Sequence record: PV764938.1
Reading direction: 5' to 3' (one strand)
DNA: 64,000 nucleotides
In this document: in pieces, positions 11,344-62,447 of the stretch
Numbering within the stretch: position 1 is the stretch's first letter
Layout of the letters: each line of letters starts with the position of its first letter
Made by a program: the position numbers and the translations under genes
The notes under the pieces: generated by a model
What the model was told of the DNA's origin: nothing
Seen by the model: only the letters and a program-made list of their open reading frames with translations
Database searches by the model: none

Positions 11344-11436
11344 CCGCGTGAGACTTGGTTAGTCAGAGAGAGCTTATACCTCTTTTAGCCCCAGATTAGG
11401 GTTCCCGAGACAGTTCGATTCTGTCCACGCGGACCA
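11344..11436 (+). tRNA. tRNA, anticodon UAU (Ile-reading) with long variable arm
   Basis: CCGCGTG/CACGCGG-A-CCA acceptor; GAGAG-CTTATAC-CTCTT anticodon arm; GCCC/GGGT variable hairpin; GACAG-TTCGATT-CTGTC T arm. Confidence 0.8.
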
Positions 11437-13025: not shown

Positions 13026-13414
13026 TGGCCCGCAAGACCAAGGCACAGGAACTCGCAGACTTCTCTGCGCACGTCAATAAGCTGGCCGTCGGCTATGGAC
13101 TGTTTCCGACAACCCTCGTCATGACCCAGATTCTCGACCTCGGCTATGATATTTCCGAGGAACGGCCCGAGAATGTGTTCCAGATCATTATGCTTGCGGT
13201 TACAGAGATCCAGACGCTCTGGGAAACGTATGGCTCCAAGCCCAACGTACTGGTCGACGCAAAGCTCGCAAACGTCCACAAGAGCCTCCAAAATGTCTCC
13301 GAAGAATATCAGATGATGTTCTGGATTGGTGTGTCCAATCACGGTGTGCGGTTCAAGCGCCAACCCGCGTTCATCACCAAGGACATTGCCGAGTATATGC
13401 TGGAAAATTCCTGA
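13025..13414 (+). CDS. hypothetical protein
   Basis: 129 aa, GGAG RBS, TAATG overlap. Confidence 0.7.
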   Translation: MARKTKAQELADFSAHVNKLAVGYGLFPTTLVMTQILDLGYDISEERPENVFQIIMLAVTEIQTLWETYGSKPNVLVDAKLANVHKSLQNVSEEYQMMFWIGVSNHGVRFKRQPAFITKDIAEYMLENS

Positions 13415-13429
13415 TTAAGTACGTACTTG

Positions 13430-13470
13430 TTGACAACTCTAGTTCCTATAAACTAATGTAGGAACTAGAG
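13430..13470 (+). promoter_or_regulatory. promoter overlapped by a 12-bp inverted repeat
   Basis: TTGACA 13430-35 and TAATGT 13454-59. CTCTAGTTCCTA (13437-48) is complementary to TAGGAACTAGAG (13459-70). Confidence 0.6.
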
Positions 13471-13890
13471 TGTGTCACACGGATACAGTGAACCCGGACT
13501 TAGACGGGCACGATGAGGCGCTGCACTCGCGTCGAACGGAACGAGGTCATCCCCGGCCCCATGCAAAAGGACTCCCGGGTAGATGTGGACCGCCGCAAAG
13601 GGTCGCCGCTGCTGATGGCAGTGAGGAAAAGATCAGTGAAATCTCCTTTGATGTTGAGAACTCTGAGGTACGAAGTTGTAGACTCGTGAAGCTACTTCGT
13701 ATTGCACGCGCCCGCAAGGCAGCGTAACCGTATGAGGGTGAAAGCCCTGGATAGCCGGAAGTTGTAGGATCACGCATACCACCTACGCGATATTCCGTAC
13801 ACGAGAAACTATGAAGCACTCGTAGGAAGTCTGTCCCCCTGTTAGGACTTTGCAATTGTTTTTGTTGCGTTGTTCTAACGGGGGGATAAT
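13465..13890 (+). ncRNA. candidate ~430-nt structured non-coding RNA, unassigned family
   Basis: Gene-free interval after a promoter. Helices ACCCGG/CCGGGT, TACGAAGT/ACTTCGTA, GGG-TGAAAG-CCC, ACGAG/CTCGT and a 15-bp hairpin 13833-47/13873-87. GNRA-like loops on the + strand. Confidence 0.55.
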
Positions 13891-13926
13891 AAACATCGCA
13901 TCTGTAGGAAATCATATACGCTTCGC

Positions 13927-14065
13927 TTTTCCCACCAATAGTCCCATCAAAACCCTGATATATTTCCCACCAAATAGCCCACCAAGCCATCCACGGAAAT
14001 AGCCCATAGAGATCTGACATCCATAACCACCCATGGAAAATCCCGGAATAATGAATACTCCGGGA
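13927..14065. repeat. C-rich imperfect direct repeats plus inverted repeat
   Basis: CCCACCAA at 13931, 13966 and 13978; AAATAGCCCA twice; TCCCGGA/TCCGGGA at 14041-65. Confidence 0.55.
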
Positions 14066-14096
14066 CTACGACTTCCTTGGAATTATGCTCTAGTAC

Positions 14097-14480
14097 TCAG
14101 CTAGTACCCCACGTCAGGAACACCTCAGGCTTCTGAGCTTTGAACCACTCCTTGGCCTCATCCGGCGTATCCGAATTGTCCAGGATCACTTGGAGCTTGG
14201 TCTGGTACTCCTTGTTTTGACTGGAATCCGGCTCCATAGCCGCCTTGAACTTTTCTTTGAGTTCAGCGAGTTTGTCCCAGCCGATATCGTTGCATTCGTC
14301 GATGTCGGTGATTTCAATGCCCAGGAACAACGGCTGATCGCCGGAACCACTGTAGGAGCTTTCGAGAATGTCCGCCTGATAGAGATCGTCGATAGCGATC
14401 TTCAGATCCTCGGAAATATCGAAATTGTTGTAGTCTTTGAGATTCAGTCCGAAAATGAACTGTCCGATTGCATAGGTCAT
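14097..14480 (-). CDS. hypothetical protein
   Basis: 127-aa acidic ORF with an AAGGAG RBS. Confidence 0.75.
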   Translation of the reverse strand: MTYAIGQFIFGLNLKDYNNFDISEDLKIAIDDLYQADILESSYSGSGDQPLFLGIEITDIDECNDIGWDKLAELKEKFKAAMEPDSSQNKEYQTKLQVILDNSDTPDEAKEWFKAQKPEVFLTWGTS

Positions 14481-50430: not shown

Positions 50431-50458
50431 TTGACAACTCTGGTTCCCATGTTAAACT
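50431..50458 (+). promoter_or_regulatory. sigma70-type promoter
   Basis: TTGACA-N14-GT-TAAACT. Confidence 0.65.
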
Positions 50459-61295: not shown

Positions 61296-61324
61296 TTGAC
61301 GCAAACAGAAGCTCACGTTATAAA
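61296..61324 (+). promoter_or_regulatory. sigma70-type promoter
   Basis: TTGACG-N17-TATAAA with A-rich upstream. Confidence 0.7.
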
Positions 61325-61338
61325 GAGAACAACAAAGG

Positions 61339-61440
61339 GCAACACATAGAGTTGGTCAGCCGGACAAGGCTTCGGTGACTAAATTTAGGTTTAGGGTGGT
61401 CTTAGGATCCCACTACAAGCTGGCCAACATTATGTGTTGC
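61339..61440 (+). ncRNA. candidate ~100-nt RNA: degenerate cloverleaf on a long extended stem
   Basis: GCAACACATA/TATGTGTTGC plus GTTGGTCAGC/GCTGGCCAAC; three small internal hairpins. Confidence 0.55.
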
Positions 61441-61444
61441 TTAT

Positions 61445-61520
61445 TTCCCGATAGCTCAGTTGGTAGAGCGTTCGACTGTTAATCGAATTGTCCCTGGTTC
61501 GAGCCCAGGTCGGGGAGCCA
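61445..61520 (+). tRNA. tRNA-Asn(GTT), canonical
   Basis: TTCGA-CTGTTAA-TCGAA; G-CCA. Confidence 0.95.
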
Positions 61521-62068
61521 ATTGAAGGATGCGTTGATGTCGCATTCCTTCAAGTCAGAAGAGGTTTGCTTTTGGAGAAAGAGCAATCCGAACTGACACT
61601 TATTTGTCCCTAGTGGACATACGGAAGCCTTAGTGCAGCAGCGAAAGCCCACGCACTTCGGGAGGGGGAGAGCAAAAAGGTTTCGACCGAAAAGTTCTCC
61701 CCCGTTTATTCAGAGGTCCGGCACTGACCAAACTCCTGATGGAGGAAACTAAGGTGCCTGGACAAAGCCGGAAGTTGTAGACGAGAACCTCGTGCTTGGC
61801 TCCTTCCGGCTCCCCAATATAGGTAAGACCAAGATATGTTGCTCCACTAAACACGGAGAGTTACACGGTTTGGTCATTGATTCGGCGTGTGGAACGGGGC
61901 CGGGATCATAAACACTTTCCCAAAGTCGGGGTTACATTTAGTAGTTTGATACCGGCGATGGCGGCAGGGTTTTGCGTGTCTTAACTCCTGCTCGTCCAAA
62001 ACTACTCGGCGCGGCCGGGAAATAAGCCGTTGCTCCGTAAAAGCAACACCGGAAGCTGGCAACCGGTT
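61521..62068 (+). ncRNA. candidate ~550-nt structured RNA region, unassigned
   Basis: No credible ORF. TTGAAGGA/TCCTTCAA, GGGGGAGAGC/GTTCTCCCCC, GTCCGGCAC/GTGCCTGGAC, GCCGGAAG/CTTCCGGC, AGTAGTTT/AAACTACT, GCAGG/CCTGC, GTTGC/GCAAC, ACCGG/CCGGT. Confidence 0.55.
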
Positions 62069-62129
62069 AAAAATATTGAACTTCTGGTTCAAGAGCTGTT
62101 AGGATTCCTGAGTAACAAAGGAGTCCACA

Positions 62130-62447
62130 ATGGCAAACATTGAACTAGGAACGCTGAAGGCGGTCGATCGTTACATTGACATGCTGGAAGCAAAAGGGAT
62201 CAAACCCGACAACTGTACGCTTGACGACACGAAGGATCCAACAAGCCTTCCACATATCCTGTGGATGTGCAAGGAACTGAAGATGAAGATTATGCCCTAT
62301 TCGGGTCATGGCTTCTCCGTCGATAAGTTTTCGAGGTGGCTCGGATTTATTCAGGGCATTCTCATCTCGAAGGGACTGACAACAGTCCGTGCAGAACGTG
62401 ACGTAACCCGTAGCTGGTTTACAAGCCAGATTCTGGAAACGGATTGA
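62130..62447 (+). CDS. hypothetical protein
   Basis: AAAGGAG RBS; HILWM...KFSRWLGFIQG. Confidence 0.8.
   Translation: MANIELGTLKAVDRYIDMLEAKGIKPDNCTLDDTKDPTSLPHILWMCKELKMKIMPYSGHGFSVDKFSRWLGFIQGILISKGLTTVRAERDVTRSWFTSQILETD

Follow-up and report, generated by a model that had tools for sequence, protein, structure and literature searches.

The gap between genes 529 and 530 of the Sinorhizobium jumbo phage Phosso likely holds an independent gene whose product is a structured noncoding RNA, read from the + strand and extending from ~13467 to ~13927 (probability of roughly 0.8). Positions are those of the window, the 64,000-nt stretch of GenBank record PV764938.1 analyzed here, which matches that record at 100% identity (record position = window position + 372000). 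The RNA belongs to a family recorded so far in a single clade of jumbo soil phages only and uncatalogued within the Rfam models searched.

RESULTS

The GenBank record annotates no gene at 13415 to 14096. Gene 529 (+ strand) ends at 13414 on the left, and gene 530 (− strand) ends at 14097 on the right. The convergent minus-strand operon (genes 532 to 530) is closed by a terminator-like hairpin, which forms the right-hand boundary of the RNA locus (Table 1); this hairpin was absent from the list of the consensus scanner. An initial annotation, made from sequence alone, had described 13430 to 13890 as a gene-free stretch carrying a promoter overlapped by a 12-bp palindrome, many helices with GCAA/GAAA-type loops, and a 15-bp terminal hairpin, without resemblance to RNase P, tmRNA, or introns. 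All of these features were present. The perfect inverted repeat is 13 bp and extends to ~20 bp; GCAA and UGAAAG cap the hairpins at 13706 to 13725 and 13735 to 13748, respectively; the terminal hairpin was found as 17 + 6 bp at 13832 to 13888; and the lack of resemblance to known classes held in Rfam and ARAGORN searches. The reading offered there, a promoter-driven structured RNA, is now supported by comparative data that were not part of its evidence.

Table 1. Features of the RNA locus (window coordinates)
Feature	Position	Strand	Details
Sigma-70-type promoter	13430-13459	+	−35 TTGACA 13430-13435, 18-nt spacer, −10 TAATGT 13454-13459
Inverted repeat/hairpin enclosing promoter	13431-13477	+	Perfect arms 13436-13448/13459-13471, extended by TGACA/TGTCA
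Predicted noncoding RNA, copy A, ~460 nt	13467-13927	+	Alignments A2, A7, A8
5′-end pseudoknot	13468-13528	+	GAGUG 13468-13472 with loop CACUC 13524-13528 of H3 (13517-13533)
5′ domain	13478-13632	+	H2 13488-13511; H3; H4 with extension 13548-13585; H5 13588-13591/13601-13604; H6 13607-13623
5′-domain pseudoknot	CGG 13537-13539 with CCG 13593-13595	+	Model R1
Variable middle	13633-13703	+	H7 13633-13666; H8 13669-13701
3′ domain	13704-13831	+	H9 (GCAA loop) 13706-13725; H10 13735-13748; H11 13756-13797; invariant CUCGUAGGAAGUC 13819-13831
3′-domain pseudoknot	GUAUG 13730-13734 with CAUAC 13775-13779	+	Model R2
Terminal hairpin H13, long, near-perfect	13832-13888	+	17 + 6 bp in Phosso copy A, 20-25 bp in homologs
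Conserved 3′ extension	13889-13927	+	Second GUAGGAA motif UCUGUAGGAAAUCA 13901-13914; CGCUUCGCU 13919-13927
C/A-rich repeated tail, TTTCCCACCAA...	13928-14020		Copies 13928-13950 and 13963-13985
Intrinsic-terminator-like hairpin plus TTTTCC	14037-14067	−	Inverted-repeat listing and sequence reading

The criterion for a sigma-70-type promoter (hexamers 16 to 18 nt apart, key positions conserved) was met upstream of the RNA, with a weak match to the hexamers themselves. The −10 hexamer, TAATGT, matches at only 3 of 6 positions, and for this reason the consensus scanner did not list the promoter. In the alignment, TTG..A-N17/18-TA...T is unchanged in 11/11 homologs, and the remainder of the promoter region is variable. 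The Phosso genome has 13 occurrences of the promoter motif, TTGACAACTCTGGTTCC, versus one for a reversed control; four copies were checked, and these lie 34 to 52 nt 5′ of start codons in the correct orientation. From this promoter, transcription is predicted to start near 13467. The arms of the hairpin that encloses the promoter have wholly different sequences among the A, B, and C types, yet their complementarity is kept in 11/11 homologs; in copy A, this palindrome also contains GUAGGAA. A covarying hairpin at this place is unexplained if transcription starts inside it. Possibly, the hairpin points to processing of the RNA out of read-through transcripts, either in addition to or in place of initiation at the promoter.

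Four relatives were obtained via a neighboring protein. Phosso itself carries a second, diverged copy (copy B), in which models R1 (record positions 71123 to 71289; 64.7 bits) and R2 (record positions 71363 to 71482; 51.2 bits) match collinearly. Both copy types are present in G007, a 480-kb IMG/VR phage, and one copy is present in G006, a 57-kb fragment. In Phosso and its 480-kb relative, the A-type and B-type paralogs have a common core and different peripheral helices. The genes upstream of copies A and B (529 and 112, respectively) are unrelated by BLASTP and profile comparison, as are the downstream genes. A-type copies face a convergent operon and therefore have no gene to lead; B- and C-type copies precede a same-strand gene.

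Outside this clade, the searches were negative. A DNA search of the phage collection returned only Phosso itself, and the small flanking proteins had no relatives in IMG/VR. More distant jumbo phages (G002 to G005; 417 to 465 kb; gsp ~45% identical) gave neither a DNA match nor a match to R1, R2, or the broader model R3. One weak, repeated model match was recorded in G005 (E values of 2.2 and 0.5). A scan of 185,579 prokaryote genomes with the conserved-core pattern produced three matches, which we take as chance because none was confirmed by the models, and a metagenome scan yielded nothing beyond the compost contig already in the set. Pfam and PHROGs were silent on the neighboring proteins except for an RNA ligase adjoining copy B. 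A shared partner protein was considered and dropped: the neighborhood of this ligase is not kept in G006 or G007, and comparison of the genes neighboring copies A and B linked no partner protein to the RNA. The literature searched held no paper on Phosso or its RNA.

The fold comprises ~13 helices and four pseudoknots, organized as two conserved domains with a variable hairpin region between them. Compensatory changes back this fold, as do G-U pairs compatible with the + strand only. In the 5′ domain (model R1), 91% of cells were paired and 16 pairs had changed on both sides, a result reached by 0/500 shuffles; slid controls gave 34 to 43% pairing. For the 3′ domain (model R2), 96% of cells were paired and 11 pairs had changed on both sides (0/500 shuffles; slid controls, 37 to 48%). 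RNAalifold detected compensatory changes in 35/74 pairs, and the helices and pseudoknots were recovered independently on MAFFT alignments, in which H3, H4, H6, and the CNGG/CCNG pseudoknot each showed 98 to 100% pairing with 3 to 5 compensatory pairs. In the R1 model structure, helices 2 and 3 reached only 72 to 74% pairing and are left unclaimed. Two long-range helices that alifold drew from the A type alone (UAGAUGUG/CGCAUCUG and CGAGGU/GCUUCG) were also dropped, as they break or weaken in homolog L157 and in the B type.

The pseudoknots join the 5′ end to the H3 loop, J3/4 to the H5 loop, the H8 loop to the strand before CUCGUAGGAAGUC, and J9/10 to the H11 loop. The first of these begins 1 to 2 nt past the predicted transcription start and spans 5 to 7 bp, formed by GAGUG/CACUC throughout the A type and by AAGCA/UGCUU throughout the B and C types; its covariation amounts to one A-versus-B/C switch, compensated at three positions. 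The H8 loop CUCGUG (13683 to 13688) pairs with CACGAG (13800 to 13805), and this pairing is kept through five sequence versions at 6 to 13 bp. Pairing between J9/10 and the H11 loop alternates between GUAUG/CAUAC and GUGUU/AACAC.

Per-pair tables of the R1 and R2 alignments placed G-U and U-G pairs at 33/286 and 28/231 of paired cells, respectively. Several columns shift from G-C to G-U or from A-U to G-U, and because the minus-strand equivalents of these switches would be A-C mismatches, the RNA was assigned to the + strand. Support for the structure rests on such comparative data and not on single-sequence folding, which was not significant alone (z = −1.72 for the + strand and −1.18 for the − strand). 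The covariation set consisted of 11 sequences in three subtypes; since a large share of the covariation traces to one A-versus-B/C split, independent covariation events are few.

The promoter and the 5′ pseudoknot together suggest a 5′ end at ~13467. The initial annotation gave a length of ~430 nt, which needs correction to ~460 nt because conserved sequence runs ~40 nt beyond the terminal hairpin. This hairpin, H13, folds in all 10 full-length homologs (−31 to −42 kcal/mol), with a conserved base (CCCC(C)UG...CGGGGG) and a covarying upper stem. No U tract lies 3′ of H13; it is thus not a canonical terminator, a second point on which the earlier description is amended. In the absence of a canonical terminator after the RNA, the 3′ end is not fixed and remains uncertain between 13889 and ~13930. 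The 3′ extension (13889 to 13927) is almost invariant across the A, B, and C types, and two GUAGGAA copies flank the terminal hairpin. Farther downstream, the C/A-rich tail motif is retained 3′ of both paralogs. Whether this tail forms part of the RNA is unresolved; on the − strand, it is readable as a small Trp-rich open reading frame (ORF) from 14020 to ~13955.

Metatranscriptome contigs from four studies cover 13450 to 13674, including the 5′ domain, and in two of the four studies nothing else within 2.8 kb is covered. One RNA-library contig starts at 13450, upstream of the predicted start. These data suggest expression without proving it: they are contigs only, without ends, strand, or level, and DNA carry-over could have produced them. 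A selection effect is also possible, because the runs were chosen for holding the stretch and the 5′ domain is its most conserved part.

We found no sign of coding in the conservation pattern. RNA identity to the four relatives was 92, 92, 78, and 73.5%, versus 83, 74, 67, and 54% for the upstream coding sequence. The RNA contains dispersed indels of 1, 2, and 4 nt, which do not preserve a reading frame. Substitutions at the three codon positions (10/11/10, 14/13/9, 32/33/27, and 40/34/33) lacked 3-base periodicity, and ORFs were not conserved in position or length among homologs.

The covariance-model search of Rfam proposed in the initial annotation was run, and no family matched. Copy A had no hit among 4227 models at gathering thresholds or at E values up to 10; for copy B and the G006 and G007 copies, there was none at E values up to 5. 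Likewise, covariance models of GOLLD, ROOL, HEARO, OLE, raiA, and other large Rfam RNAs matched no copy at these thresholds. ARAGORN reported no tRNA or tmRNA in the gap, and the tmRNA criterion (tRNA-like domain plus tag frame) was not met. Nor was the criterion for group I or group II introns, as no Rfam intron matched in the copies searched. Flanking exons are absent: a stop codon closes the upstream gene, and the downstream genes run on the opposite strand.

The sequence shared with the region at 61.76 kb, pointed out in the initial annotation, did not reflect relatedness. The 15-mer AGCCGGAAGTTGTAG is indeed exact at both 13753 and 61766, and GAAGTTGTAG recurs at 13672, as claimed. However, the 13672 copy is part of a covarying stem, where homolog L149 has GCTACTGTAG, and the CCTGGA portion forms the 3′ side of another stem that covaries, with CCCAGGA and GCGAGGA in relatives. 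The 3′-domain covariance model scored ≤1.8 bits throughout 61300 to 62300, and BLAST against the 61.5- to 62.1-kb region gave only short, scattered matches; kinship between the RNA and this region was rejected on these grounds. Since all 110 matches to the 15-mer in IMG/VR sit in unrelated contexts, it is shared by chance, and the GAAGTTGTAG repeat is chance as well.

DISCUSSION

We infer that a host-type RNA polymerase would start at ~13467 from a promoter class used elsewhere in the phage and that the RNA would be a stable product acting in trans. If the RNA gene is real, our best guess at its role is a protein-binding scaffold or decoy, an inference made without a known partner, which we hold to be less likely than not. 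Here, a rigid pseudoknotted core would display the conserved single-stranded motifs GUAGGAA (three times), GGAACGA, and UGUGGACCGCC, and their target may be a factor, from phage or host, that serves RNA or translation metabolism. On the same premise, a ribozyme is unlikely; the remaining odds go to a mechanism that is unknown. A bolder reading, possible though unlikely, places the RNA at the heart of a novel phage ribonucleoprotein or makes it a novel large ribozyme, with which jumbo rhizobiophages would re-tool the host RNA or translation machinery. The A and B paralogs would then provide two specificities or two times of action.

The closest parallels are the large phage-associated noncoding RNAs GOLLD and ROOL. 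Like them, the Phosso RNA exceeds 400 nt, is intricately folded and pseudoknotted, lacks an ORF, comes from a tRNA-rich phage, and appears to be its own transcription unit. Unlike GOLLD (~800 nt) and ROOL (~580 nt), it is smaller, with no sequence or structure match to either, and comes from one clade of jumbo soil phages with two diverged paralogs per genome. By inference, the RNA would resemble 6S and decoy RNAs in being stable, abundant, structured, and protein binding, and the repeated single-stranded GUAGGAA (three times) could be binding sites, for which no partner is known. In contrast to 6S, its architecture is not that of a long helix interrupted by a central bubble, and the Rfam 6S models did not match.

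Few bacterial or phage RNA classes longer than 400 nt have an intricate, pseudoknotted fold that evolution has maintained. The understood classes (rRNA, RNase P, tmRNA, and self-splicing introns) perform central biochemistry, and GOLLD, ROOL, and OLE are long-standing puzzles. The Phosso RNA offers a clean comparative signature: four covarying pseudoknots, two paralogs per genome, and its own conserved promoter. If the bolder reading is true, the very few large functional RNAs with complex folds would gain a new class. Phosso is in culture on the genetically tractable Sinorhizobium meliloti, so deletion, pull-down, structure probing, and cryo-EM are feasible.

A first alternative is that the sequence is a cis-acting part of neighboring transcripts with no function in trans, either a structured 3′ untranslated region or a processing or stabilizing element of the upstream operon (genes 525 to 529), or the leader of a downstream gene. 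In its favor, the RNA locus begins 17 nt past the stop codon of gene 529, a same-strand gene follows the B- and C-type copies, the RNA-library contig starting at 13450 precedes the predicted start, and a covarying hairpin over the supposed promoter is what would be expected if read-through RNA folds there. Against it, copies A and B share neither upstream nor downstream genes, and the invariant promoter core is a member of a genome-wide promoter class. The predicted 5′ end coincides exactly with the 5′ strand of the first pseudoknot, a strand that the hairpin would trap in a read-through RNA. Moreover, a 460-nt fold with four pseudoknots far exceeds the needs of a stabilizer. We therefore consider a purely cis-acting role very unlikely and favor the stand-alone RNA gene.

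It is also highly improbable that the RNA is an antisense or antitoxin-like regulator of the convergent Trp-rich peptide encoded at 14020 to ~13955, in the style of a type I toxin-antitoxin system. An ORF of ~22 amino acids (M.SDF.ESF.W..W..IWWE.R*) is readable in Phosso and in homologs L149 and L153, copy B is followed by an annotated gene, CDS 114, with a similar string (..KESY..IWWEI..), and the tail motif is retained behind both paralogs. However, in the alignment as read by eye, the frame is broken by a stop in G007, and conservation there looks nucleotide level. An 11-nt insertion in Phosso alters the C terminus, no convincing ribosome-binding site precedes the ORF, and the ORF sits 3′ of the terminator-like hairpin of the minus-strand operon. 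Finally, the copy B peptide is not hydrophobic, and the conserved, covarying core of the RNA lies outside the overlap.

A DNA-level element, such as a replication origin, a packaging site, or a cluster of protein-binding sites, could be invoked for a gene-free stretch at which transcription converges, bounded by a long palindrome on one side and by direct repeats (TTTCCCACCAA...) on the other. The initial annotation had named such a function as what would refute an RNA; the pairing evidence speaks against it, as compensatory changes preserve Watson-Crick/G-U pairing on one strand only and the pseudoknots covary. In addition, each genome holds two diverged copies at unrelated loci, the stretch is present in RNA libraries, and 13467 to 13927 contains no AT-rich unwinding region and no iteron array. 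This explanation has very little likelihood.

Equally hard to sustain is membership in a known family (RNase P RNA, tmRNA, group I or II intron, GOLLD, ROOL, or 6S) disguised by high divergence or circular permutation. Type A RNase P RNA (RF00010) is of similar size, has several pseudoknots, and would suit a tRNA-rich genome; Phosso has >40 tRNA genes. In copy A, the strings ACAGUGAACCCGGACUUA (5′) and GUAGGAAGUC (3′), which we take to resemble CR-V and CR-I of RNase P, could pair. Unlike in RNase P RNA, however, the order of the two strings is inverted, and the P4, P1, and P2 architecture is absent. RF00010 matches nowhere in the whole 469-kb record at E values up to 10, the would-be P4 pair is altered in L157 without compensation, and the CR-V-like string, which is hairpin H2 with its covarying stem, is lost in copy B (AAACGGCGAAUCCGGGAAGUC). 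A permuted RNase P was rejected on the lack of any RF00010 match across the phage genome and on the nature of the motif, a covarying hairpin lost in the paralog.

The remaining alternative, one or more missed protein genes, is all but excluded: a 157-amino-acid minus-strand ORF (13547 to 14020) and a 58-amino-acid plus-strand ORF (13513 to 13689) do exist, and gene callers place a 75-amino-acid gene in L149 and CDS 113 in copy B at homologous places, but the ORFs are not kept, indels break the frame, substitutions are even over codon positions, and hand translation of two 58-amino-acid ORFs puts the invariant block UGUGGACCGCC in one frame in copy A and in another in copy B.

A conserved, unannotated gap in Phosso likely encodes a new structured RNA family

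We consider it likely (probability of roughly 0.8) that the + strand from ~13467 to ~13927 (copy A) carries a large, structured RNA that belongs to a new family, found here in a cultivable jumbo phage; its function is untested. By megablast, the window matched Sinorhizobium phage Phosso, a circular record of 469,473 bp (PV764938.1), at 100% identity (window position + 372000 = record position). The record has no annotated feature from 13415 to 14096, confirming the gene-free stretch proposed in the initial annotation. Upstream of this gap, the + strand carries ClpX-like, IF-3, tRNA-Ile, and HNH genes, and a convergent operon on the − strand carries genes for glutathionylspermidine synthase, DUF1190, and NUDIX. 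The tRNA-Ile(UAU) (11344 to 11436; 93 nt) is unusually long for a class I tRNA. A terminator-like hairpin (TCCCGGAGTA/TATTCCGGGA, followed by TTTTCC) closes the convergent operon of genes 532 to 530.

Other features described in the initial annotation also held: a promoter (TTGACA, 13430 to 13435; TAATGT, 13454 to 13459), a palindrome over the promoter (a perfect 13-bp inverted repeat overlying both hexamers), loops of GCAA and GAAA type, a 17 + 6 bp terminal hairpin (13832 to 13888), a 15-mer in common with 61766, a 10-mer repeated at 13672, and the lack of a match to RNase P, tmRNA, or intron cores (Rfam and ARAGORN return nothing in the gap). Its reading of a promoter-driven structured RNA is supported and the underlying observation confirmed. 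The single-sequence fold was unconvincing alone (z = −1.72 on the + strand and −1.18 on the − strand).

Searching a phage collection by DNA returned Phosso itself and no other phage. A word search with protein 529 gave relatives at 90, 78, and 64% identity, on contigs from compost, soil, and other metagenomes that retained both gene order and gap. Nucleotide identity across the RNA region (92, 92, 78, and 73.5%) exceeded that of the upstream coding sequence (83, 74, 67, and 54%) in each comparison, indicating that the gap is more conserved than the adjoining protein gene. Two covariance models built from four A-type sequences, R1 for the 5′ domain (13478 to 13632) and R2 for the 3′ domain (13704 to 13831), detected a diverged, B-type paralogue (copy B) on the + strand of the Phosso record, with collinear matches at record positions 71123 to 71289 (R1, 64.7 bits, E = 8e-15) and 71363 to 71482 (R2, 51.2 bits, E = 2e-9). 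GenBank CDS 113 (71160 to 71336) and CDS 114 (71557 to 71673) fall inside copy B or its tail and are likely not genes.

Further relatives of copy B were fetched via protein 112, and a pattern of positions invariant in both paralogues identified two IMG/VR contigs. G007, a complete phage of 480 kb bearing terminal repeats, has one copy of each type (A, 124.8 bits; B, 52.6 bits), and G006, a 57-kb fragment, has a single copy (79.3 bits). More distant jumbo phages (417 to 465 kb) gave no match with R1, R2, or a broader model, R3. Three pattern matches in prokaryote genomes were dropped, as the covariance models did not confirm them. Within the genomes searched, the family is therefore known from a single jumbo soil phage clade, with two paralogues per complete genome. 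In one 417-kb IMG/VR phage (G005), two 5′-domain models weakly matched the same place (262960 to 263042, − strand; R1, E = 2.2; R3, E = 0.5), possibly a very diverged homologue or chance.

The region is very likely noncoding and probably folds with four pseudoknots

Four observations make it very likely that the region does not encode protein. Homologues differ by scattered indels, most of them 1, 2, or 4 nt long; substitutions are even over the three codon positions (10/11/10, 14/13/9, 32/33/27, and 40/34/33); ORFs of ≥40 aa vary in place and length; and in the 58-aa ORFs from a conserved AUGAG, the invariant block UGUGGACCGCC lies in different frames in copies A and B (hand translation). Summed from per-pair tables, G-U plus U-G pairs make up 33/286 (5′ domain) and 28/231 (3′ domain) of the paired cells, and several paired columns alternate G-C/G-U or A-U/G-U. 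Because G-U pairs would become A-C mismatches on the − strand, we read the RNA from the + strand.

RNAalifold on nine sequences predicted 74 pairs, 35 with compensatory changes. When the alignments were fitted to the models, a structure inferred solely from the A type also held in B-type sequences. In the 5′ domain, 91.1% of cells pair (16 doubly changed pairs); in the 3′ domain, 96.3% (11 doubly changed pairs). None of 500 shuffles reached the observed pairing and double-change values, and slid controls paired at 34 to 48%. A separate search on MAFFT alignments for covarying, fully paired stacks recovered six of the helices (see table). Comparative evidence supports all four pseudoknots, the second occurring also as CAGG/CCUG, UUGG/CCAA, CUGG/CCAG, and CUAG/CUAG. 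Terminal hairpin H13 spans 20 to 25 bp across homologues, with a conserved base and a covarying upper stem. H5 is invariant save for one C-to-U change giving a U-G pair in the B copy of G007 (5′-domain alignment, by eye). We do not claim R1 helices 2 and 3 (pairing 72 to 74%) or two long-range helices proposed from A-type sequences alone, which are broken in one homologous locus (L157) or in the B type.

Coordinates of features at the RNA locus and its paralogue (window positions unless a record or a locus of a B- or C-type copy, L162, L182, or L183, is named)
Feature	Position	Strand	Comment
Gene 529	ends 13414	+	left border of gap
Gene 530	ends 14097	−	right border of gap
Terminator-like hairpin	14037-14067	−	
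Promoter motif sites	13430-13446; 50431-50447		11 further in PV764938.1
H3	13517-13521/13529-13533	+	covarying stack
H4 + extension	13548-13556/13575-13585	+	covarying stack
H6	13607-13613/13617-13623	+	covarying stack
H7		+	covarying stack
H10	13735-13738/13745-13748	+	covarying stack
H11 outer stem		+	covarying stack
Pseudoknot 1	13468-13472/13524-13528		5′ end GAGUG with H3 loop CACUC; AAGCA/UGCUU in all B and C types
Pseudoknot 2	13537-13539/13593-13595		CGG with CCG in H5 loop
Pseudoknot 3	13730-13734/13775-13779		GUAUG with H11 loop CAUAC; GUGUU/AACAC in B and C types
Pseudoknot 4	13683-13688/13800-13805		H8 loop CUCGUG with CACGAG; five versions, 6-13 bp
Copy B (diverged B type)	PV764938.1 71090-71600 (L162 ~1470-1980)	+	outside window; 3′ of RNA ligase gene and gene 112
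Gene-112 family protein	L162 878-1441		25-26% identical mutually
Gene-112 family protein	L182 1730-2251	−	as above
Gene-112 family protein	L183 1743-2264	−	as above

Promoter, ends, and expression

Ahead of the RNA in all 11 homologues, TTG..A, 17 to 18 nt, and TA...T are kept and the rest varies freely; the kept positions are the key sigma-70 positions. The copy A version (TTGACAACTCTAGTTCC) belongs to a motif with 13 occurrences in Phosso versus 1 for the reversed control (promoter-class motif TTGACAACTCTGGTTCC, at up to 3 mismatches), and four copies examined lie 34 to 52 nt 5′ of a start codon in the right orientation. Inferred from sequence alone, a start ~7 nt past the −10 hexamer would place the 5′ end at ~13467, immediately ahead of the GAGUG arm of pseudoknot 1. 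Since no U tract lies 3′ of H13 and strong conservation carries on beyond it (UCUGUAGGAAAUCA, 13901 to 13914; CGCUUCGCU, 13919 to 13927), the 3′ end remains undefined. Farther on, both paralogues keep a repeated tail rich in C and A (TTTCCCACCAA(A)TAG; 13928 to 14020 in the window). On the − strand the tail is readable as a Trp-rich ORF of ~22 aa in Phosso and homologous loci L149 and L153; this frame is interrupted in G007 (alignment, by eye).

A hairpin at 13431 to 13477 takes in the entire promoter, reaching from the −35 hexamer to ~+15, and covaries in all 11 homologues; the arm sequences of the A, B, and C types bear no relation to one another, yet the two arms are always complementary. 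We found no explanation for this hairpin, which may signal processing of a read-through transcript or a DNA-level role.

Parts of the stretch occur in five RNA libraries from five studies, four of which were mapped. One soil and one plant-associated library yielded one contig apiece (13482 to 13623 and 13485 to 13642), the rest of the 2.8 kb examined being empty; one wastewater library gave a contig at 13450 to 13674 plus small pieces in flanking genes, and one soil library covered the entire neighbourhood. Expression is thus possible but merely suggested: the contigs lack ends and strand, such libraries can contain DNA, and the runs were chosen for containing this stretch, in which conservation is highest in the 5′ domain.

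Possible functions of the RNA

The two paralogues have different, unrelated upstream genes. Each B- or C-type copy is immediately preceded by a member of the gene-112 family; that of G006 has ArsR/MarR-type winged-helix matches at residues 73 to 107. The RNA ligase neighbour is limited to near relatives of Phosso.

If the RNA gene is real, the mechanism we rank first is a protein-binding scaffold or decoy acting in trans, although we hold it to be less likely than not. This preference is inferred from the fold, given the rigid multi-pseudoknot core, conserved unpaired motifs, three GUAGGAA copies, and paralogue-specific peripheral helices; function is untested. Under the same premise, a ribozyme ranks second and is unlikely, again without a functional test. 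Rfam models matched none of the copies, and there was likewise no match to tmRNA, introns, GOLLD, ROOL, HEARO, OLE, raiA, or 6S. Circularly permuted RNase P was weighed, since strings in copy A recall CR-V and CR-I and can pair, and was rejected: RF00010 has no match over the whole phage, the CR-V-like string is hairpin H2 (a covarying stem whose loop differs in copy B), and L157 alters the would-be P4 pair without compensation.

The sequence shared with 61.76 kb does not point to kinship. Across 61300 to 62300 the 3′-domain model scored ≤1.8 bits. The CCTGGA portion, like the 13672 occurrence of GAAGTTGTAG, is a stem arm altered in relatives, and the conserved element consists solely of UUGUAGG and a stem. 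We therefore attribute the match to chance, or to no more than a short motif in common. The 110 matches to the 15-mer across IMG/VR were all unrelated, chance occurrences. Another gene-free stretch of ~580 nt (61520 to 62100) lies between tRNA-Asn and a small gene. Rfam models matched nothing in it at E up to 10; it is unrelated to the copy A RNA and may be a further noncoding RNA.
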